DNA of 64,000 nt, from contig NW_027271156.1 in the NCBI RefSeq assembly GCF_040938485.1, positions 558,001 through 622,000 on the forward strand. The letters are read 5' to 3'. The notes beneath the pieces were generated by a model. It was not told the DNA's origin, did not search any database, and saw nothing but the letters and a program-made list of their open reading frames with translations. Position 1 is the stretch's first letter, and every line of letters starts with the position of its first letter. The stretch comes from Diadema antillarum. Taxonomy: Eukaryota. Position numbers and translations under genes: made by a program. Positions 2,990 through 51,774 of this stretch are shown here, one piece after another.

Positions 2990-5900
2990 CCTGGTTCCTG
3001 ACTGGTCCACTGCCACTGAATCAACACTCTTTGCATGTCCTCGACACGTGTGCAATGGCCTGGCTTGCTTCTCATCCTCCTTCCACTCCCAAATGATCAG
3101 GGTCTGGTCATGTGATCCACTTACAAGCAAACTCTCAGAGCCACCTACAATGCACAATGAGCAAAATATAATCACAGGATGTGATTATATGTACTTGATA
3201 CCATTAAAGGTACCGTTTATCATCGGGAGCAGCGATTTAAAAATGTTCGAGTTATCACATTTGATGCACATTTGTAGGTCAGTTGTATCACTAAAATCCT
3301 ACCATGAAATGTTGGAATAAAGCCTAAAATATGAAAGATATGTCATTATTTTTCTTAATTAACCACAACTGTACCCAGTTTATTCCAGACACAATTTTAT
3401 TTTCACTACTGTTCACATTTTGTACATTTAACTATACTTAACATTGATTAAACTGAGTAACATTTTCAGTGGTCATTTCTCTCCCCAAGTCACATTTTAG
3501 AACTACATGTATTTTGAAGCACTAAAACTAGGGTTTTCCATTTCATCTGCAATTAGTAAATAATACCTTTAATGATACTGTTCAAAATTTGCTGTGTATC
3601 TGAAAGTTTACACTCCTCTGATCCACTTCATTCCTTGCCAGTGGATTAGTAGTCACGGCGACAATTCCTTGTAAACTTTTGATTCACAACATCCATAGAA
3701 ACAAGGTATTTATAAAACTTCAGGAAGAAGGCCCATCTCCATATGACACCACACAGAGGCTTGAAATATCTGAACATCATCAGTACACTGATGGGGAACA
3801 AACAAGTGGCACAAGGAAGACTGATGTCGACCCTTCAAAATGAGGATTGTATAAACTGTACACTGACACGAGAGCAGTTACTACAGCAGCCGGTGGGGTA
3901 TGATTAATCAGTGATGGCAAGCATTATAACCCATGCCCTACAGGAACCTGGTGGTCTGTGTATTAAGTCTATGGTGCTTTCAGAATTTAGTATGGAACTG
4001 GTTCATTATTCATGCATCCATTCGATGACTGCAAACATGTTAATACTGTAAAACATGATATTTTCACAGCATGAAATTTTCTCGAATTGAAGCCGACAGC
4101 CTTTTTTGCGAGTGGCCTCTAACATTCAGTGCATATACAGTGCTGTAGTGTAGACAAGACCTTTCACATGCCTTTTAATTTCGCGAATCCTAGCTCTCAC
4201 AAAATTTGCAAAATTAAAATGCATGCTAACATTCCTTATTTTACAGTAAATGATGCCGCAGATCATTTTTCGTTTCTGCAATTCACCTGTTGTGATCCAT
4301 TTGACACATTTCACAGGATCTGTATGATACTGTAGTGTCGCAACATTCTCTCCATTCTTTCCCCACAGTCGAACGCCGTTGTCATAGCAACCCGTAAGGA
4401 TTCTAGGGAGATAAACAGTGAACACTCACCATAATACAAATACTAAGCTTTTATCATCTTCATCTTCTTTTTTCTGGAGTTCTAAGCAAAATTCATACAA
4501 AATGGATGAGTCACTTCATTTTGGAAAACTTCGGTCACAAGTGCTGTACAGATTTTCATATTACCATCATTATCTAATGCTGGTTTATTGTTATGATGTG
4601 TATGTACAATGCTCAGAAACAACTTTGATGGTAACGCATAAAGTTATCAAATGTCCATTTGTAATTATCAAAAATATGGATAGACTACATAACAGAATAA
4701 CTGTTGTTATTTCAAACATTACAATATGATACACTTTTTTTTTACATGTGCACCTGTATGTCGACCATAGATGTGTATACTAAAATGTATTGGCATGTGA
4801 TATGCAATGTAACTCAGGACTAAATATGTGACCCGCTACAACAAAAGGATCCTAAAGTCGTTGACGGCTGAGCCGAGAAAATCGAGTTTGAAGTCACATC
4901 ATCAAAATTGGTCAAAACAATTGGATTTCTGTTTTTGGCATAATTTTGTAATCTAATGTTTTATCTATCATCTGCTGAAATTTCGAAGCTTAACCCTAAA
5001 AAGATTGGGGGGGGGGCCTAAAAGGCTCCCCCCTCTACATTTCGCGTGATTACTCTGCAACACGCAATGCTCTCGCTGCGATGCTCTAGGACTTTTTTCT
5101 TTCAAGTTTCCCGCACATTTTGACACAAAATTGGTGACGCCCGGGGGTACGGTTCTGAAGTTACATAACTTTTTGTACATGCATGTGACACCGAAAATGG
5201 CTCAAAAATGTGATTTTGTGTACAAAGTCAATGCAAATTGAGTTTTTTCACATGGTTCATATAAATATGCTTATCTTTACTCTCAATGGCTAAAATTAAT
5301 TTGTTTTTAGGAGTATCATGCTTGAAAAAGTGTCTGCCACAAATTTTGTTAAAAAAACAACAAAAACAAACGGTCGAAAAAACAAAGAAATACATAAGAA
5401 ATTCATAAAACAATAAAATAAATAAGAAATTAATTTTGATACCAAATTTTTTTTCAAGTACATTTGCTAAGAATGCCACAAAGAATAATTAGACCAAAAA
5501 TGAGCACTTTTGGAATTTTATTTACTGATTTAGATCAAAGAGTCTGATTTCTCGCATAAATTAGCATAATTAATCAAAATAAAAGAAAAGAAATCTTGTA
5601 GATTACATCGCACACTACCATTGTGCAAATTTTCGCGGCGATGCTCAAGGGATCGTATAGTTTTGGTTGAGACCTAATTTCAGGTTTCTAAAATTTTTTG
5701 GTGAGATAATGAGAAACCTCATATGAAATATGAAAGAGCATGTGATTCCATGAGGAATTCAATATTTATTTGATGAAAATTGGTTTTGAAATGGCTGAGA
5801 AATCCAAAACAGAGCAATTCTAATAAAGTGTGGGACCCACACTTTATTACGATCGCTTTGTTTTACTTTGTTTTTGGATCTTTCAGTCATTCCAAACCTG

Positions 5901-8900
5901 AATTTCATCACATAAACTTTGAATTCCTCTTAAAATGGTATGCTCTGTACTATTTCATAAGTGTTTTCTTGGTTTCTTGCAAAAACCTAAAAGCCCCATT
6001 CTCATCTCCACCAATACTGTACTATCCCTTTAAGGGGGGGGGGGGCCTTTAGGCCCCCCCAGTCTTTCGAGCTACCAAAATAGCCCAGTCTTTTTAGGGT
6101 TAATGATCAAAGGAAAGGCAAGAAATCAGCGTTTTTCTGGACTATGATTTTCTGACTTTCAACGTAACAGAAACGTGTCCGAAGATTTGTATTTTTAGCG
6201 CCGCAGCTAGACTCCGCCCCTAGCAACGAGGGAGTGAAGTGATCTTATTGGTCAGTGCGTGGCATCCTGAAACTGATTGGTCATGCGTAGACCGCTGGCG
6301 CTAAGCTTGAATGAACATCGCGGAGGTCGCTAGGAGCATGCCTTCTATTGTCCAGCGGTGAAAACTGTCTCGCCTCCCTTTGATCATGACTGCGTCAGAA
6401 GGAAAACTTTGAAGGCGATTTTCTCCAAACTCTAATTTCCTCAACCACTTGACATGCGCTAATAAAATCATCAATATCTCCGCAACCGAGTATTTTTATA
6501 AGCTGTGCTATATATGAAATTAAAGTAGAAGAGTAAGGGAATAATGTCATGCCATTTTTAGAAAATTGTCCTTCCCCAACTTTCGGATCCTTTTGTTGTA
6601 GCGGGTCACATACATGTATATCTTTAACACTTTTGTATACCGGTAGTGCAATCAAATCATCCGGCTGGTTGAATGGTCTCTCTGTTACATTGTTCAACCT
6701 TCCGAAGTGTCGTTATTGTATAAACAATTTGAAAACCCACAACAGGTGAAATTGACCACTGACCTTCAACTGTATTCAATTAAGAATAGTGTGATTAAAA
6801 CTTAATAGGTCTATACATCTGGACAAGGTTCAAATTCATATGTATGCCAGAAACTCCGATGAATTCATTGCACGTTCTCCACACAGATGCTAATAAGCAG
6901 TGAAATGCCAACATGCAGATCTCCTCCCCTCCCCCCCCCCCCCCCCCCATCCATTTAGGTTGGAATTTTGAATACGAATACCAGGATACTTAACTACACG
7001 TACCTACGTGTATGTAATTTTCCTAGCTACACACATAGGAAGGCATGACCATAAGCTAAGTATGTAATCCCAATCCCAACCATACATGCAGATGTGTACA
7101 ATTTTTCTTTTTTCCCTGAGCTGTTAGAACCTGGAACCTCCTGTAATGTTGGGTCACACATGCTCCAAGCAAAGGGGCATGTGTTTTTACTTGCACCATG
7201 CACAGTCACTTTAACCCATTGAGGACGAGTCCCGAGTATACTCAGGCAGGGGTCTATGGGAAATGCGTGTTGTAGCTAAATCAGTCCGTCCTCAACGGGT
7301 TAATTGTACATTAGTGACATTTAAAATCATCCTGCTCACCATGTCACCTCTCACTGACGCAAAACACTTCTGTCATCCCGGGATAGTTCCAAGGAGCTGC
7401 TGAAAGGTGTTAATGCTTCAAAGTTCAAGGTTCAAGACATGGGCCTTGTGACTTATAAGAGGATGTAGACTGCACAATTTATACTAACCTGTCATTCCAT
7501 CCATGAATAGCACTAACCCAATCGTCATGCAGAATGCTCCCCACTGGTTCAGGGGCAGCCTGCTTCACAACATACTCCACCTCAACGACTGTTTCGGTAG
7601 AGATGCCGCTAGCCTCGAGGTGACTGGCCAGGGGCAGTCGAAGGAACTCTCCATCGATGAGGAAGTCAAAATCCACATTCTGAATGTCTGCCTCTGCCTT
7701 ATCTGTCCATCAGTGAAACAAAAAGGACAATGCAATGACCTAAAGTTTGTAGCATGTATCTGTTTTCAGAGCGCTTCAGAATACTGTAAAATGAGGAATG
7801 TTTGTGTGCAATTTAATTTCGCGAGAGCCAAGATTTGTAAAATTAAAATGAACATGAAAGTTCTTGTCTACACCATACACATAGAATGTTAGAGGCAACT
7901 CGTGAAAATTTTATGCTGCGAAAAACAGCCATCGACTCCAATTCGCAAAAATTTCATGCCGCGAAAATATCGTGTTTTACAGTAAATCATAAAACATCAT
8001 GGAGATCTATATCACACAATGGCATATGACAGAAGCAAATGATTAGAGCATGAGAATATGCAATTTTATATCATCATCTTCAACAGATAATGAAATTGGT
8101 CCATACAATTGTACTTCAACACCTACCTGTGTCGGTTCACTGTACATCACCTAATGCACAAATTCGCATGTAATTAATACACACTCATACATTTTGTAGA
8201 TGAAACCTGGGGATATTTATCTGGTAGCACTAGGATTAGACAGTTTACATATTCAAAAATGGAAAATATCGTTATATTGGGATATCTATCTGTTAGTACT
8301 AGGATTAGACAGTTGAACAAAAGTATCATTTAAATTGCATAAATCTATGAAAAAAAAGCAATAAAAAAAGTTTAAAACCCCAAATAACATTCAACATTTT
8401 TTAATATTATTATAGGAAAATGAATTTTACCTTCATTTAGGAGCTTGTTGATGAGAGAACTGAGTTCTGGGACACCCACATTCGCCGGCACAGAAAATGG
8501 GGTATCAGAAACACGGTATCTGCAGCAGGATCAAGAATGTTACAGGCAAGAATAAGATTACAGAATCATTAGACACTGCAATAATGACCACGTTTAATCA
8601 GTGAAGGACTGCTCTACCTGAGATGAAAGTTCTTTGCCATTACAATCTTATCAACTGATCTGCACTTATAATGCAATGCATATTTGTTATGACCTGTGTG
8701 GACTTGAAAATGTCAGTCTTCCATTGAAACTGAATTGCAATTTATAAAAGAAACTAAATTTAGAAATGTTGTTTATGTGTTGTAAGGGTGTAGAATTCTT
8801 TTTTTCTGTCTTTCTTTGGTTCCCAGAGGTAATAATTAGGTTAAAGGTTCTACAGCAAGAAAATTTGTGTAAGGCCAAGTAAAAAAAGAAACCAGTTTCT

Positions 8901-13466: not shown

Positions 13467-13604
13467 TTTTTTCTATGTTGTTGTTGTTTTGTTTTATTGT
13501 TCAGTGAATCGTAGTGGCGTTTTCCGTTTTCATCTCCGAGCGAGCGAGAATATTTACGTCATCCACGGTCATCCGTCAGTTTTCATTCGTTCTGCTGAAC
13601 GATT

Positions 13605-13994
13605 TTAAAGGGCTCATATAGTTTTGGTTGAGACCTAACTTCAAGTTTTTAACATTTTTGGGTGAGATAATGAGAAACCTCTTATGAAATATGAAAGAGC
13701 ATGTAATTCCAAGAGGAATTCAACGTTTATTTGATGAAAATTGGTTATGAAATGGCTGAGATACCAAAAACAGAGCTATAATAATAAAATGTGGGACCCA
13801 CATTTTATTACAATCGATTTGTTTTACTTTGTTTTTGGATGTCTCAGCCATTCCAAAACCAATTTTCATCAAATAAACTTTGAATTCCTCTTAGAATGGC
13901 ATGCTCTGTACTATTTCATAAGTGGTTTCTTGGTATCTCTGAAAAAGTTAAAAGCCAAATCCTCAGCTCTACCAATACTGTATCATCCCTTTAA
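13605..13994. mobile_element. TTAAAGGG...CCCTTTAA-family MITE just upstream of the WDR12 start
   Basis: Terminal inverted TTAAAGGG/CCCTTTAA; homologous to 5647-6032 and more distantly to 44090-44450 and 49789-50181. Confidence 0.75.
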
Positions 13995-14224
13995 ATTCAA
14001 AAGTAAGTTTTTTTGTTTGTTTGTTTGTTTGTTGTTGTTGTTGTAGTTGGTTTTTGTTTTTGTTTTTTGGTCACGCGTATTTGAAAGCAGTGCTGTATTC
14101 GCTTTACGAATAAAATAACTAAGGATTCTCACTTCACAGTTAAGGTATAGGAGTTCATTTTAGTATTGATCTTTCAGTCCTTCTATTGCCTGATTTTTTT
14201 CTCTCATTTATACACATTAGGATA

Positions 14225-16350: not shown

Positions 16351-16387
16351 CTACTTCTACTACTATGCTACTACTATAGTAGAAGTA

Positions 16388-16461
<74 letters not shown>

Positions 16462-16510
16462 TGGTAGTAGTAGTAGTAGTAGTATAGTAGGCCTACTAAT
16501 AGTAGTAGTA
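16351..16510. repeat. (CTA)-like tract followed by a long (TAG)n microsatellite
   Basis: Pure TAG run from about 16388 to 16461, with imperfect flanks. Confidence 0.9.
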
Positions 16511-17133
16511 TAGAGTACACATAAGAGTAAGAGTAGTATAGAAGTAGCACAACTGCAAGTATCGCCGTCATCTTTTCACTCCATTTTGAAAGCGGGGAAA
16601 AAATACAATAACCACTCAGTTGACTGCATACCGGTAATATAGCCAAGCATAAATCAGTTGAGAAGTTGTTGCTGGACAATCTTTCAATTCTAAAGTGCCA
16701 CATCTATTTCACAGCTTAAACACAATGACAACAACAGCAAACAAACAAAAAAACAATAATGTAAAGGTCAAAAAGGTGACAAGAATGATCAGACCTGTGT
16801 GGATGTATATCCGTATACGAATACGAGAATTATTGCAATGAAGTCATTGACTTTTGTGGTTTTTGAATTATACCTTGCACCTCCTGCCTCGTGAGGATAT
16901 GATGTCACCGGCAGTGCTCAGGAAATACAGCGGTCCAAACTGTGTGCTGTATCAGTCAGCACTCGCGGGTAGACCATCTGCTGACTGGTACCAGGTACCA
17001 GATATTGTTGTTGTTTTTGTTTTTGTTCTTTTTATTTAGTGATATAACACGGTGATTAAAGAGTTGAAGAGTAGGATCCTATACAATGGAAAGGAAGAGA
17101 GAAAGAAAAAGGAACAGATATATAGATGTATCG

Positions 17134-17183
17134 GAGAGAAGAGAGAGAGAGAGAGAGATGATGATGATGATGATGATGATGAT
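17134..17183. repeat. Compound (GA)9-(GAT)9 microsatellite upstream of Trf
   Basis: (GA)9 at 17141-17158 runs directly into (GAT)9 at 17157-17183. Confidence 0.92.
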
Positions 17184-18093
17184 ATAGGCAATCAGACATA
17201 CTTTTGGCGGAAATAAAATAAAATGAAATGAAATTAATTAAGGTTTTTACTTTCCCTATCGCAGTCATTTTGTTCCCTGTTCAAATTCATTATTGATGAA
17301 GTGAATACCTGTCAAATATCAGTCAGCCCCCTTTAAAGATAAACAAACTAAACAAGAAATTGTAAGCAAACAAACAAACAAAACATAGAGATTCATCAGT
17401 CATTTATTGATATCATGATCTTATTCCACAGTTACCCCCTCCCACACACACACACACATACACACAACTACACTCAAAGATGAAGGTAAAATTTTACATC
17501 TCGATCCTTCTTGACGTATGATATTATATATAATGTCATAATGACATGGTTGAAAGCAAAGGAAGTGACAAAAACAAACATCTAAAACAAATTTAAAACA
17601 TGACTGGTACTAACGAAAGAAAAAAAGAAAAACAAGCAGGCACAACAAAGATCTGAGAAATCGAAATGAAACATTCGTATACAAGTTGTAACAAGTATTG
17701 AAGAGAGCATCTCGTCATTCTCATTCCTTTATTATCTAACAAGTGTAAAATTGAAATTTGGCAACTTTTTTGTTCTTTTTCCTTCTTGATTTTAATTAGT
17801 CTAATGTTCTCCCTTTGTGTGCTCGACCTAACTTATTTTGATAAAGTCATGAAGTTGAATGCACTCCTTTATACTTTATTAGGCTTTAATTGCCCCCTTT
17901 CAATCCGTTGGTCATTATGGATGCCCATTTGCGCCTTTTGTGTTGCTTCACTTTTGTTACGTCCTGTTCTTCACCCCGATTCCCTGAACAATGTGTCAGT
18001 CGCTGCCTCACACGGCCGGAAAGGCTGTGGAATAAAACCGGAAAAACAACTCATGAGCTGTAACAGCGGGTGATTTGGTACTGTCAGGCACCG

Positions 18094-18126
18094 ATTGGGA
18101 CGATTTTCAGCTCAAAATGTATAAAA
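18094..18126 (+). promoter_or_regulatory. Putative Trf core promoter: inverted CCAAT box (ATTGG 18094-18098) and TATA box (TATAAAA 18120-18126)
   Basis: The motifs are read directly, about 110-140 nt upstream of the Trf ATG. An Inr-like TCAGATT follows near 18151. Confidence 0.55.
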
Positions 18127-18235
18127 GTCGACCACATTGTCTGTACTCCTCAGATTTCTCGGGTTCGTGCTTCCACGAGAGAAAAACTTCCAAAGCAACG
18201 AACAGAAAACTTGTCAAGAGACGGATTCCATCACA

Positions 18236-18649
18236 ATGGCCTGGAAATCAACTTTGTTCATCCTCTTTCTCGCTGCACTTACTGTCGCAGGTAAGAATAA
18301 CCTCTTTCTTTCACATCGAGTCCTATTTTTTTTTTCATATGTGTACTCTTTTACCTATTCCAAGATTACAATAAAAAAGTTTAGATAAAAATTTCAATAT
18401 GCACAGAGAATGAGAGAAGAAAAAAAATTACGCGAAACTGAAATTCAAATAATCAGAGATGGCGTATGTTTGATTTTCTGCTCGATAAATCAAACCAGCG
18501 CTTAAACACTGTCTAGCCAAAACAAAAAAAAACAAAAAAAAAAAACCCAGATATGAATAACATATATATAATATATGATATATATTATAGATAAATACTT
18601 TTATATATATGAGATTAAAATCTCATATATAATAATATCTATATATACT

Positions 18650-18688
<39 letters not shown>

Positions 18689-20153
18689 TTAAACTTTATT
18701 TCTGTGTTAATTATAACTTCGTATAACAATTACACTGTGTTTATGATTCCTAGTCTCTCTCTCAGGCTGGAAAGTTATTATTTTTACTTTCTGAACGAGA
18801 ACGATACTCACGTATAATCACGGGAAAAACGGTTAGAGTTGGTTTTCAGTTCTACATTACTTGTTGCTTGAAGATTACATTATTATCTCAACGTCTAGTT
18901 TCCTTACCAGGGACTTTGGATAGCGTTTAAATGCTATGGGGTTTTGTGTTCCAATACGCACTCAAGGCGCACAAAGGGTTGACATGAGGCTACCACAAAG
19001 GTGTGTCTTGATTTGCAAAGTTCGGCAGGTCTAATTGCTTCTATTCGTCTAATAACGTAACGTTTTGTCCACTTCTTTTGTTGCAATATCTGAACTGATA
19101 CCCTTCATAGTACTGTACATTGACAATGATACCACCAAGATTGGAAACACGCGGACTTTATAATATACGTCTGTCTTTGGTGCTTATTTTACAGTTTGCG
19201 CACAGAACGGTCGTCGGGGTCCAGACGATATACGAAGGCGGGGTCGACCCTCTGATCGTCCTGGTAGTTGGGGAGGACCAGGTGGCCGCCAGACTGAGGC
19301 GAATCTAGAGCAACGCGGAGGCGGACGACGAGATGGTGGTCGTAGGAATGAGGGACGTTCTCGACCAGGGGAGCAATTTTCAGACGGCCAAGAAAGACAA
19401 GGCGTAGAGGGAGGTGAAGGAGCTGAGTTCGGAGGACCAGGGGGCTTCAGACGAAGAGGCGGTAAACCGTTCTTTGGACAGGGAGGAAGACAAGAGGAAG
19501 GTCGACAAGGAGGACCGGATGGGGATATGTCACCGATGTCTTTTGGTGGTGGTAGGAGGTCTGATAGAGCCAATGAAACTGATGGAGACGAAAGCTTCCC
19601 TGGTCGTCATCACGGAAGGCATCACTCACGCCACCATCACCATCATCAACATCACCATGGAAGGCGTAATGAGAGTGAGGAATCTGAAGAAGGAGATAAC
19701 AACGGTACCAGTATCTTCCCTTTCAGGTTCGGTCGCCATGGAAACCGCCGACATCACCATGTAAAGTGCAATGAGAGTGAGGAGTATGATGGCGAAGAAG
19801 ACAACAATGACACTCGCATCTCTGACTTCGAGGATGCACCATTTGGTAGACCATCTCGTCGTCGTCATCATCCCTGCAAACGTAATCGTACTGAGGAGGA
19901 AAATGAAATCTCAGATCGAGGGGATCGCCGTGATCAATCTGGACGGGATGGTGGGCGACGCGGCGAAGGTGGAAATGGTCATCCCTTCCAACGTCCGGGC
20001 AATGGTGGTCGTCCATTTGGCCGTCGAGGTGACAGAAAACCCGACAGCGATGACGAGGACATGTCGACCACTATCTCAACAAGGACTGAAGAAGTTGAAA
20101 TAGAAGCAGTTGTTACCGACATCCCCGAAGTGAATGACGGATTTTTGGCATGA
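18236..20153 (+). CDS. Trf: Transformer (Trf / 185-333)-like secreted Gly/Arg-rich, His-rich immune effector protein, 337 aa
   Basis: Exon 1 18236-18290 (55 nt, hydrophobic leader MAWKSTLFILFLAALTVA, donor G|GTAAG); phase-1 intron 18291-19194; exon 2 19195-20153 open to TGA. The product has a signal peptide, a Gly-rich region containing GGKPFFGQGGR (SpTrf GGRPFFGQGGR as recalled), PGRHHGR, His-rich repeats with six N-X-S/T sequons, and an acidic C-terminus (TEEVEIEAV). A leader exon plus one large exon is the known Trf architecture. Confidence 0.8.
18645..18683. repeat. (TA)n microsatellite in the Trf intron
   Basis: Uninterrupted TA run at about 18653-18683 within an AT-rich tract. Confidence 0.85.
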
Positions 20154-20553
20154 GCAGACTTTCTTCGTGTTTTCATGCCCAAGGACTTGGTGAACATTAG
20201 AATTTTGTTATCGACCCTGCTTAGCTCGTTTTACGTGGAATGGCACAGACTCGATTGCTCCAAGTTGTATGTCATATACATGTATTTGGAGCAGTAATCC
20301 CCTTTAAAATCTTTCCCCAAGCTGCCACAGACTTCTGCAGTCACGTTTTCTTATTTCTCGACTGCACTCAGGACTTTTGATAATCTCCCGTTCAGCGTTA
20401 TTACCCAATTTCTAGAAAATGATAAAAACCTATTTGATATAATTTTGTTCATATAAGTCGCCACATTTGAAAATGCAATTTGAAATGATCATGATTTGTC
20501 GTATTAACTGCCACTTTTGACAAGTGGGAACGGAATATGCATGTAAAAATAAT

Positions 20554-20559
20554 AATAAA
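20554..20559 (+). promoter_or_regulatory. Candidate polyadenylation signal for the Trf gene
   Basis: AATAAA about 400 nt after the Trf stop. A second AATAAA cluster lies near 21315-21330. Confidence 0.35.
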
Positions 20560-24108: not shown

Positions 24109-25380
24109 TCAGACCGGGGTACCCTCTCCTCTTGATGAGGTTTCAGTTCTGGCTTTGGTCTGATCCACATTTGTTACGTCTTCGAGAGAAATCTTGTCCA
24201 CGGCGTGAAGGAGACCGTCCAGGTTGTCGTGATACTGCTTGCCAGACATCCCCAGCTGGCTTGGCAGAGGGCTGCTGTAGGCGTGAGATGCTTCCACCTC
24301 CTCCAGAACCCTGGAGGACTTGAGGTCCTCTACAGCCCCTCGCACCAAGACATTGAGAAGCCACTCAGAGTTACGCTTGCGCTCCGTTGTGAGGGGTGGG
24401 TAGGGGTTCCCGATGTACTCCAGGAAGGCCGTCTTCTGATTGTGATCTCCTTGGAAACCCGGAACTCGCAACAGCCTGGTGAAGTTCCGTGTTGTCCCTT
24501 CAAAGCGGGGACCTAGCACTTTAAAAAGCTTGTGAACTTGCTTCTTATCCTGTGATAAGAACAAAAAGAGACAACATTGACTACTTAATTTGTAGATGAC
24601 ACATGTAACAGGAACTCTTTGACAATTTGAAGTGTTGGTTGAAGGTATTTTATGATTATCAATAGACTTGACTTTGAACATCACGATTTTAATGCACTGC
24701 AAGTTAGACCACATGTTTGTCATTTTAGAAATATCATAACATGTCAGCAAACTTTGTTAATTTTTCAGTCATTATCATGCTATCTGTATGCAGTCTCCAA
24801 GGTTTAAAGAAATAACCATCATTAGTGATGTTTTCCCTTCACTCAATCATGAGCAAAAGGGCTTTTAATCCATCTAGAACAAGCTGGTTTAATGTAGCAC
24901 ATATTTTTCAATACCTGTTTGTGCATTCTCACGACTAGTCTTCGACAGGTTAATAACGTCACTTTAAATTTCAAGAAGTATGCATACATTGTACATATTG
25001 AGCTGTTAAATCATTCACAGTCAACACATTGAAGACAGAACATGCAAAAAAGTCCTTTGAAGAAATGCACAAAGAAAGTAATGCATTTACAAGTACTTGT
25101 TTCAAAGCCTTTTCCTTTTTTTTCAGTGATATTTCATGTGACATTTCAATTAAATTTCAGTGATACAGATGAGAACAGTCTGCAGTACCAAGCCTATAAA
25201 CAGAGTGCTGGTTTACACAAAAACAATAAATTCCCTAAGTACTTCTTTTTCTTATTTTCCTTCTTCATTCCACTATCACATGCCTTGCAATGTTATGAAA
25301 ATAATACAAAACATACAGTGTTGACAACTTTTGTCCATTCCGTACACTCAAGGAACATACTCTGAAAAACACATACATAT

Positions 25381-25415
<35 letters not shown>

Positions 25416-44089: not shown

Positions 44090-44450
44090 TTAAAGGGTGT
44101 GTACAGTTCTGGTCGAGGTGAGGATTTTAACGTTTTTAACGTTTTGCGAGATATTCAGAAACCACTCTATGAGATGTCAAAGAGCATGCAATTCTAAGGG
44201 GTATCAAAAGTTTATTTGATGAAATCGGTTTTGAAATGGCTGAGATATCCAAAAACAAGGCGTGGCCTGTCGCATCACTTTTTTGGATGTCTCAGCCATT
44301 TGAAAAACAATTTTCCTCAAATAAACGTTGAATCCTTCTTAAAATTACATGCTCTTTCATATTTCATAAAAGGTTTCTCATTATCTCACTTAGGAATATT
44401 CAAAACATGAATCCCCACCTCAACAAGTACTGCATGTACAGTCCCTTTAA
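44090..44450. mobile_element. TTAAAGGG...CCCTTTAA-family MITE
   Basis: Same termini and internal blocks (GGTTTTGAAATGGCTGAGAT, GGATGTCTCAGCCATT) as 13605-13994. Confidence 0.7.
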
Positions 44451-49747: not shown

Positions 49748-49788
49748 GTCCCTTCCCCCTCCCACGTCCTTTGTTCGTTTCTTTGTCT

Positions 49789-50181
49789 TTAAAGGGATGA
49801 TATAGTTCTGGTTTTAAGAGGAGATTCAGATTTCGAATTTTTGCGAGATAGTTACTAAGAAACTACTTATATGAAAAATTAAAGAGCATATACAATATAA
49901 TAGTTTATTTGATGAAAATCACTTTTGAAAGGGCTGAGATTTTCAAACACAAAGCAAAACAAATCGGTCTTTATAAAAAGTGTGTCCCACCTTTTATTAC
50001 AGTGTATTTTTGGATCAGCCATATTAAAACCGATTTTTATCAAATAGAACTTTAAATTCCTCTCAGAATCTTACGCTCTTAAAAATGTCATATAAATGGT
50101 TTCTAATCATCTCACACACACACACACACAAATGTTAAAATCTGAATCCCCATCTCAATCAAAACTGTACCATCCCTTTGA
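49789..50181. mobile_element. TTAAAGGG...CCCTTT-family MITE, diverged
   Basis: TTAAAGGGATGATATAG start and CTGTACCATCCCTTT end; internal similarity to the other copies. Confidence 0.65.
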
Positions 50182-51774
50182 AATCGCTTTTTTAATCTTT
50201 CTGGGGATCTCCTTCTCTCGATTGTCATGCTGGAAACAACAATGCGACGCACTCATCAGCAGGTTTGAGATGCGCAGACTCGAAGTCCCCGACTTTGGAT
50301 GCCTTTTGTTACCAGCCATGATAATTTTCTGATTGCAAAAATGTAGCGCAGAAATTAAACTATTTAACATGACAAGGGAAGGACGGGAAAAGCGATAATT
50401 TTGAAGAAGGGAATACAGATGACATCTATAAGGCACAGTTTGAGATTGTGGCTGCTCAATTTAACGCAACGAATTGTCAAAAATTGTTGACGATGAAAAT
50501 CAAAATGGATGACGAAAACCAGAAACAAGCCATTTCTTTTTTCTAATGATACCATAATGATCAATGCTGTCACTTTTGATTATCAAGAGATCCATGAAGA
50601 GATATTACCACTATGATGTCATTGCAAGGCGGTTCCTGAAGTTGTTTAGTCTAATACTAACATGTTTACGGGAATAGATTTGGTAAATGCGTTCACTCAA
50701 TGCTAGTTTATTCAAACGGCATCTGTGATGATTCTTTTTTCCCTGATCACAGCTTAATTAGTGCAGTCGTAGAGGCATCCCAGATTCCTCGAACTGTATC
50801 GAAGAGTGGAGTTGAACATAGTTAGTAGTTAGATCATGTAAATCATGATAACTGCTTTTACCGAACTCTAAGGCATCTATAGTACGATAAGAGTAATTGT
50901 TTTCTGAGGATACTATGCTGTCACTTTATATCAAGATATCCTTGAAGAGATTAATACCACGCCATGGCAAGGCGTTTCCCGAAATTGTTTAGCAATATTT
51001 TCGCCTACGAGACGCTGTCAAAAATAAACGAGGAATGTGTAAAGGAGATAAATCAGAGTTGTTTTATCCTTATTACAACCGGGTAAACAGGATGTGATAC
51101 TGATTGTCTGATTGCACAGAAACAAAAAACAAAAAAAGGAAATGATGCAATCCTATAATGTAGAATTTGATTTGAATGAATGAATAATGACAGGCGACGG
51201 AAGACAAGATATAAGAGCACTTTGAGAAAATGTCAAAAGACAAGGTCACTCCAAATGACCAATGTAATTCTGTGTAATGAGTGAATGTAACAATAGTCGT
51301 GATGAACGTTATCATTTAATTTAAAGTCTGAGGAAAGACGGAAAATCCGTTTAAAAGTTATAAATCTTTTAAGTTTCAGTGCCGCCGTCACTGGATGGGA
51401 AGACAGTTTGTGACATCACTGCAGGACAAGGATATAGTTATAAAGAAAATAATCACAGAATTCAATCTCGACTTTCATCTTTGAGAGCAACGTAGGGGGA
51501 TCAATATTACCCTTAACATTGTGTCAGTATAACTATAGTCGACAGTGTGTGTATTTTCATTTACAAAAAGAAAATGACATTTTGTGGAATTCTCTTTATG
51601 TATTTCAGTCTTATATCGTTGTCCTGCCGTGACGTCGCAAACTTTTGTAATCTTCTTATCCAGTGATGGCTGCACTGAATATTTAAGAATTCATAACTTT
51701 TACACTGATTTTCTGATTTTCCTCTAACTTCCTTGATGTGTCCATCTATTCCTGCATTCACTCAATCCACACAA

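Follow-up and report, generated by a model that had tools for sequence, protein, structure and literature searches.

A Trf-like gene family in the diadematoid sea urchin Diadema with one conserved, dispersed member

Diadema is a euechinoid genus outside Camarodonta, and the locus described here raises the question of whether a small gene of D. antillarum, standing alone between two housekeeping genes, belongs with the Trf (185/333) immune effector genes of other sea urchins, and how it came to occupy this site. Trf genes have been recorded from six species, all of them Camarodonta, and they are reported to be absent from cidaroids (PMC8634487, PMC5491942). Our literature search found nothing that links Trf or 185/333 to Diadema beyond the D. 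antillarum genome paper, which names the family as one of interest without analysing it (PMC13511894), and nothing relevant on coelomocyte challenge in Diadema. The initial annotation had described the gene as solitary and Trf-like and had suggested a new Trf lineage, at a locus that could be ancestral or orphan. We analysed the window, i.e. the whole 64-kb stretch, which sits on D. antillarum contig JBFRCO010000268.1 and corresponds to our locus L006 (identical over 21.9 kb), and arrive at a modified reading, to which we assign a probability of roughly 0.6: the gene belongs to a Diadema multigene family, of which it is a functional, dispersed and single-copy member, and this family is the diadematoid counterpart of the camarodont Trf genes.

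The gene lies on the forward strand, spans 1.9 kb, and has the two-exon structure with a 55-nt leader exon and one large exon that had been read from it at the outset. Exon 1 (18236–18290) begins with the ATG at 18236 and covers the first 18 codons and one nucleotide of the signal peptide, as judged from the sequence and from tblastn with residues 1–18 of the protein P0001; it ends at the donor CAG/GTAAGA (CAG/GTAAGAA in an alignment of six copies). The phase-1 intron (18291–19194, 904 nt) contains poly(A) and (AT)n repeats at 18519–18683 and closes with the acceptor TTTTACAG immediately before exon 2 (19195–20153, 959 nt), a single open frame with a TGA stop at 20151–20153 that encodes the end of the leader and the whole mature protein. 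The likely 3′ UTR (20154–20559) is set by an AATAAA at 20554 in a motif scan. The spliced product of 337 aa is 100% identical to P0001, an NCBI ‘uncharacterized protein’ of D. antillarum, and a second haplotig (JBFRCO010000663.1) has the same neighbours and encodes an identical protein; haplotypes are known not to have been fully collapsed in the D. antillarum assembly (PMC13511894). Upstream of the ATG, promoter and 5′ UTR (17928–18235) are conserved in the alignment of the six copies, which come from two species. The motif scan placed an inverted CCAAT box (ATTGG) at 18094 and TATAAAAG at 18120; the TATA and ATTGG elements are invariant in the alignment, and the promoter, the 5′ UTR, exon 1 and the donor are near-invariant. 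Tandem Repeats Finder detected (GA)13 followed directly by (GAT)9 at 17134–17183, about 1.05 kb 5′ of the ATG, and a block shared with tandem-cluster copies (16680–17158, + strand) forms the 5′ edge of a duplicated unit, with 68–72% identity over ~480 nt in blastn comparisons of the loci L001 and L002 with the window. A (TAG)45 microsatellite occupies 16377–16510, just 5′ of this boundary at 16680, and 154 N at 60788–60941 mark a masked stretch or an assembly gap.

The leader MAWKSTLFILFLAALTVAVCA is a 21-residue signal peptide, which leaves a mature part of ~316 aa with 19% Gly, 16.5% Arg and six N-x-S/T sequons. By regional composition, the leader (residues 1–21) is followed by a Gly/Arg-rich region (22–155), a His-rich region (156–176), acidic repeats with N-glycosylation sequons (177–260), a second Gly/Arg-rich region (261–300) and an acidic C-terminus (301–337); the strings PFFGQGGR and PGRHHGR, to which the initial annotation had pointed along with the leader, are present. 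A Pfam scan of the exon-2 product returned no family match, and the ESM Atlas model of the exact 337-aa sequence has a pLDDT of 0.40 and a pTM of 0.11, the mature protein being predicted to be intrinsically disordered. Both Diadema species keep two RGD motifs in their solitary gene, at residues 260–262 and 296–298 (recorded as window equivalents 19013–19021 and 19121–19129), where every cluster copy carries RWD and RGG instead. Composition alone leads one to expect ~0.8 such motifs, and the RGDs were set aside as evidence.

The two neighbours are those first proposed. MRPL17 (bL17m; 24109–28536, minus strand), a 223-aa protein with the Pfam domain PF01196 (Ribosomal_L17), identified from its open reading frames and its orthologues P0008–P0010 and P0013, is convergent to the solitary gene at a distance of 4.0 kb and served as our synteny anchor. 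On the opposite side, 4.8 kb away and divergent, lies a protein of 447 aa with NLE and WD40 domains, for which the name WDR12, as opposed to Notchless, rests on the Pfam NLE+WD40 labels of the called gene, and beyond MRPL17 there is a BTB-BACK-Kelch gene, again by Pfam labels. No second copy was detected in the 64-kb window by tblastn with four family proteins, and 18 kb upstream and 44 kb downstream of the gene are free of paralogues; the statement that no second copy is present therefore holds for the window, whereas the genome contains a multigene family. An interspersed repeat of ~390 bp occurs at least four times in the window (5647–6033, 13603–14006, 44090–44450 and 49788–50196) and is found in both Diadema species (also at L004:20587–20984 and L010:9304–9692). 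It matches the same place in both orientations and is thus palindromic and MITE-like.

Close relatives of P0001 were found in Diadema only in a protein database search. On D. antillarum contig JBFRCO010000249.1 (L001), at least three intact copies are arranged head to tail within 21.5 kb, and about 40 kb from them lies one divergent paralogue, P0005, with 376 aa and 33% identity to P0001. In D. setosum, a three-gene cluster (L002), P0004 (L003) and P0007, the orthologue of P0005, all lie within ~190 kb of chromosome OZ188187.1, where the cluster region runs from 4.54 to 4.73 Mb. P0005 and P0007 (L004 and L005) constitute a second, very divergent subfamily that adjoins the tandem cluster in both species; they contain two and three 74-aa tandem repeats, respectively, and differ by exactly one such unit, which was gained or lost between the orthologues, and small block indels exist among the type-1 copies, to which the solitary gene belongs. 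The solitary gene is thus a family member and not an orphan: what stands of the proposed orphan locus is its solitary position, and what falls is the orphan status. In blastn, the window resembles the cluster copies only within 16680–20160, a unit of ~3.5 kb comprising promoter and gene. As the similarity stops at 16680 and at 20160, the cluster contig is not an allele of the solitary locus, and we rejected the idea of an allelic haplotig also because the corresponding D. setosum loci are on different chromosomes. P0004 (L003:9414–11057, annotated with 349 aa) is a rearranged copy in which the inverted 3′ end and 3′ flank of the gene, matching window 20777–20084, are fused straight onto exon 2; its protein consequently opens with residues that derive from antisense sequence and lacks a signal peptide, and it is probably a chimeric pseudogene. 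It was discarded as a candidate orthologue of the solitary gene, being rearranged, near the cluster and between other flanks.

The true orthologue was located by way of the D. setosum MRPL17 orthologue (P0013) on OZ188205.1, a different chromosome from that of the cluster, which bears out the solitary position: 4 kb downstream of MRPL17, and convergent to it as in the window, lies a gene of 344 aa, and the D. setosum flanks can be aligned collinearly with 15.6–35 kb of the window. Exon 2 of the two orthologues is 96% identical at the nucleotide level, with a dS of 0.10 and a dN/dS of 0.31. Since an orthologue with these values is present at the same site, the solitary gene is functional, older than the split of the two species, and under purifying selection. 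That it is more than a chance open reading frame follows from this dN/dS together with the conservation from promoter to donor in the six copies, and a pseudogene is ruled out, as the gene is intact in both species.

How the Diadema family relates to Trf was assessed with two published fragments of S. purpuratus Trf (SpTrf) of 70 and 78 aa (supplement of PMC9623053). BLASTP of these two fragments against P0001 gave collinear matches that start in the Gly-rich region and extend into the C-terminal tail, with E-values of 0.003, 0.03 and 0.03. With composition adjustment, the best match to an SpTrf fragment comprised only 12 residues, and P0003 gave no match. Smith–Waterman comparisons reached p-values of only 0.01–0.1, a Diadema HMM matched the SpTrf Gly/RGD fragment with p ~0.007, and the SpTrf C-terminal fragment beat all 2,000 global shuffles but did not stand out from block shuffles in which local composition was preserved (p 0.16). 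In profile searches, four Diadema proteins run with HMMER against 1.84 billion representatives returned Diadema proteins only at E ≤ 0.001, and a five-sequence profile run against 5.8 billion word-indexed proteins returned Diadema only at E ≤ 10; neither returned Trf. Of the initial interpretation, a likeness to Trf is supported by the structure, the region order, several motifs and the GA/GAT repeat, and not by homology at the level of database searches.

These results have to be weighed against the reading that the Diadema genes are convergent look-alikes, a secreted low-complexity family specific to Diadematidae and unrelated to Trf by descent, which might serve immunity or another purpose, such as building an extracellular or biomineral matrix. 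Composition, a signal-peptide exon and tandem duplication are common solutions, many secreted proteins are encoded by a short leader exon and a single large one, and the database-wide silence on Trf and the marginal, mostly compositional pairwise similarity are what such a family would give. Yet the octamer to nonamer PFFGQGGR(R) is shared exactly between the Diadema product and SpTrf element 6 at an equivalent position (shuffle p ~1e-3 to 1e-4), the matches are collinear, and the motifs recur in the same order. The published SpTrf sequence reads ‘...GGRPPFFGQGGRRGDGEETD...’, with ‘FGRKPFGDRPFGRRNGT...YGNRGRWGGENESEE...TTSSPPEVVEIAVNEEDVNVVAEV’ at the C-terminus (PMC9623053 supplement), and the Diadema counterparts are ‘GGKPFFGQGGRQ/RR’, ‘GGRPFGRRG’, ‘HGNRGGR’, acidic NESEE blocks and ‘...TEEVEIEAVVTD...’. 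The length of exon 1 is close to that of SpTrf, and the GA+GAT repeat has the same placement as in SpTrf, where GA and GAT repeats flank each gene (PMC8634487). GA repeats lie 0.85–1.4 kb upstream of most family copies and number 15 per 88 kb of family loci versus 2 per 64 kb in the window; a 3′ GA repeat is not present at the solitary gene. Furthermore, the nearest two of 7.7 million Atlas clusters to P0001 are ‘Sp185/333’ and ‘185/333’, and the same two rank first and second for P0005 in spite of its low identity to P0001, with scores of 0.89/0.85 and 0.86/0.85 and 0.72 for the next cluster, scores below 0.9 being leads only. Lower-ranked neighbours (0.63–0.68) are disordered proteins of the mineralisation type, such as enamelin, MEPE and ODAPH. 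Such matrix proteins resemble the Diadema product in the signal peptide, the low complexity, the acidic stretches prone to phosphorylation and glycosylation and the missing fold, but they score 0.63–0.72 as against 0.85–0.89, share no motifs and are vertebrate families. On balance, we consider independent origin of the likeness unlikely, if worth keeping in view, and true homology to Trf likely; as far as sequence comparison can tell, the Diadema family and the camarodont Trf immune effector genes are probably homologous, if very distantly so.

Set beside the known Trf genes (SpTrf, HeTrf, PlTrf and LvTrf), the solitary gene shows the same division into two exons, with an exon 1 of 51–55 nt that codes for a hydrophobic leader (51 or 54 nt in SpTrf; PMC8634487, PMC5491942) and a mature protein of ~300 aa on a single exon. 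SpTrf proteins are ordered as leader, Gly-rich region, multimerisation/RGD element, His-rich region and C-terminal region (PMC5491942), and the Diadema product follows the order Gly-rich, His-rich, C-terminal, with PFFGQGGR(R) (element 6), RPFGRR, (Y/H)GNRG, acidic NESEE and an EV(V)EI(E)AV-type tail; like Trf, it is predicted to be disordered and has several N-x-S/T sequons. Family copies in tandem clusters, with GA (and GAT) repeats on their 5′ side, and repeat-unit indels between Diadema orthologues are further shared traits. The differences are that a database-level sequence match is lacking and the host is a diadematoid and not a camarodont; that the intron has ~900 nt versus ~400 nt; that a second Gly/Arg-rich block follows the His/acidic part; and that no element-pattern mosaic is seen among close Diadema paralogues. 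RGD is known in Trf of S. purpuratus only (PMC5491942); in Diadema, no RGD follows PFFGQGGR, and the two RGDs that are present elsewhere are specific to the solitary lineage. Finally, the Diadema member is solitary among housekeeping genes, orthologously conserved and under a dN/dS of 0.31. Trf genes are typically found in tight tandem clusters, in which the solitary gene does not take part, but the family as a whole does cluster. A single-copy Trf-type gene is not without parallel, as LvTrf of Lytechinus variegatus is single-copy and not in a large cluster (PMC8634487). LvTrf does not occupy the site between MRPL17 and WDR12, since this gap in L. variegatus has neither a called gene nor a tblastn match to the Diadema family.

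This brings us to the origin of the solitary copy. One could imagine that the WDR12–MRPL17 site is the original home of the family, that the clusters came later, and that camarodonts lost this copy, a reading that takes up the initial idea of an ancestral locus predating cluster expansion. In our trees, the solitary pair falls outside every cluster copy of its type, though support is modest (76–81); this supports a lineage distinct from the cluster copies, and the site is conserved in the two Diadema species. The D. antillarum cluster copies form a clade of their own, however, and such species-specific clades point to gene conversion or turnover in the cluster, by which a dispersed copy that is not converted comes to look basal. 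In L. variegatus and S. purpuratus, Kelch(−), MRPL17(+) and WDR12(+) follow each other as they do in Diadema, with their orientations unchanged, and the MRPL17–WDR12 gap (4.7 kb in L. variegatus, 2.1 kb in S. purpuratus) holds no called gene and no tblastn relic in either of these two camarodonts. The otherwise empty S. purpuratus gap contains three GA short tandem repeats (L009:14269–14467), which count in favour of this reading but may be coincidence, as GA repeats are common in urchin genomes. The dS between solitary and cluster copies is 0.35, about 3.5 times the dS of 0.10 at the species split and far too low for an event that predates the separation of the orders, and the much deeper split of the family, between the P0005/P0007 type and the type of the solitary gene, is located at the cluster locus. 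The unit of ~3.5 kb that is common to solitary and cluster copies also speaks against an ancestral locus, which we regard as very unlikely. The empty camarodont gaps and the dS of 0.35 versus 0.10 instead indicate that the solitary gene is a copy transposed within the Diadema lineage. On the most economical reading, a unit of ~3.5–4 kb, with the upstream block, the GA repeat, the promoter, both exons and the intron, was copied as DNA from the cluster locus, landed in the MRPL17–WDR12 gap before D. antillarum and D. setosum separated, and has since been retained by purifying selection.

With regard to function, Trf proteins are known for rapid induction in phagocytes upon immune challenge and for binding of LPS, glucan, flagellin and phosphatidic acid, and we infer an immune role for the Diadema counterpart by analogy. 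The leader would direct secretion, and on the model of rSpTrf-E1 (PMC5491942) the protein may be secreted by coelomocytes. The blocks follow each other as cationic Gly/Arg-rich, His-rich, acidic and putatively N-glycosylated, second Gly/Arg-rich and acidic tail, and the disordered cationic and His-rich regions could bind many microbial surface polymers and anionic lipids. It may well be that the PFFGQGGR region, as the counterpart of the SpTrf multimerisation element 6, drives multimerisation, and the outcome would be opsonisation. The many dibasic sites, the cationic Gly/His-rich stretches and an apidaecin-type multipeptide precursor among the Atlas neighbours (0.68) might suggest a precursor from which cuts at RR/KR free several Gly/Arg- and His-rich antimicrobial peptides, but this is hardly credible, as P0001 has no regular peptide-plus-spacer units, its internal repeats in self-alignment are not above shuffles, and conservation is no weaker in the acidic, glycosylated blocks than in the cationic ones.

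What is new here is a diadematoid gene family that resembles Trf and includes a single dispersed, conserved member. More tentatively, and with the odds rather against it, one may go on to propose that Trf predates the diadematoid/camarodont split and that Diadema keeps a ‘frozen’ single-copy Trf gene at a fixed site besides fast-turning clusters. The system would then be far older than its recorded range in Camarodonta implies, and the frozen copy, with its purifying selection and its own two conserved RGDs, would suggest a role without diversification, perhaps in regulation or cell binding, that sets it apart from the clustered pathogen-binding copies. With a Trf-like family present in Diadema, the origin of this unusual immune gene system would shift to a deeper point in the sea-urchin tree, and an outgroup would be at hand for studying how its elements and repeats evolved. 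Comparing the solitary conserved copy with the unstable clusters offers a natural way to ask whether Trf diversification is driven by clustering and flanking repeats or by selection. D. antillarum has gone through two mass die-offs, and given these and the interest in Trf/185/333 expressed in its genome paper, the Diadema loci are concrete targets for immunogenetic work.
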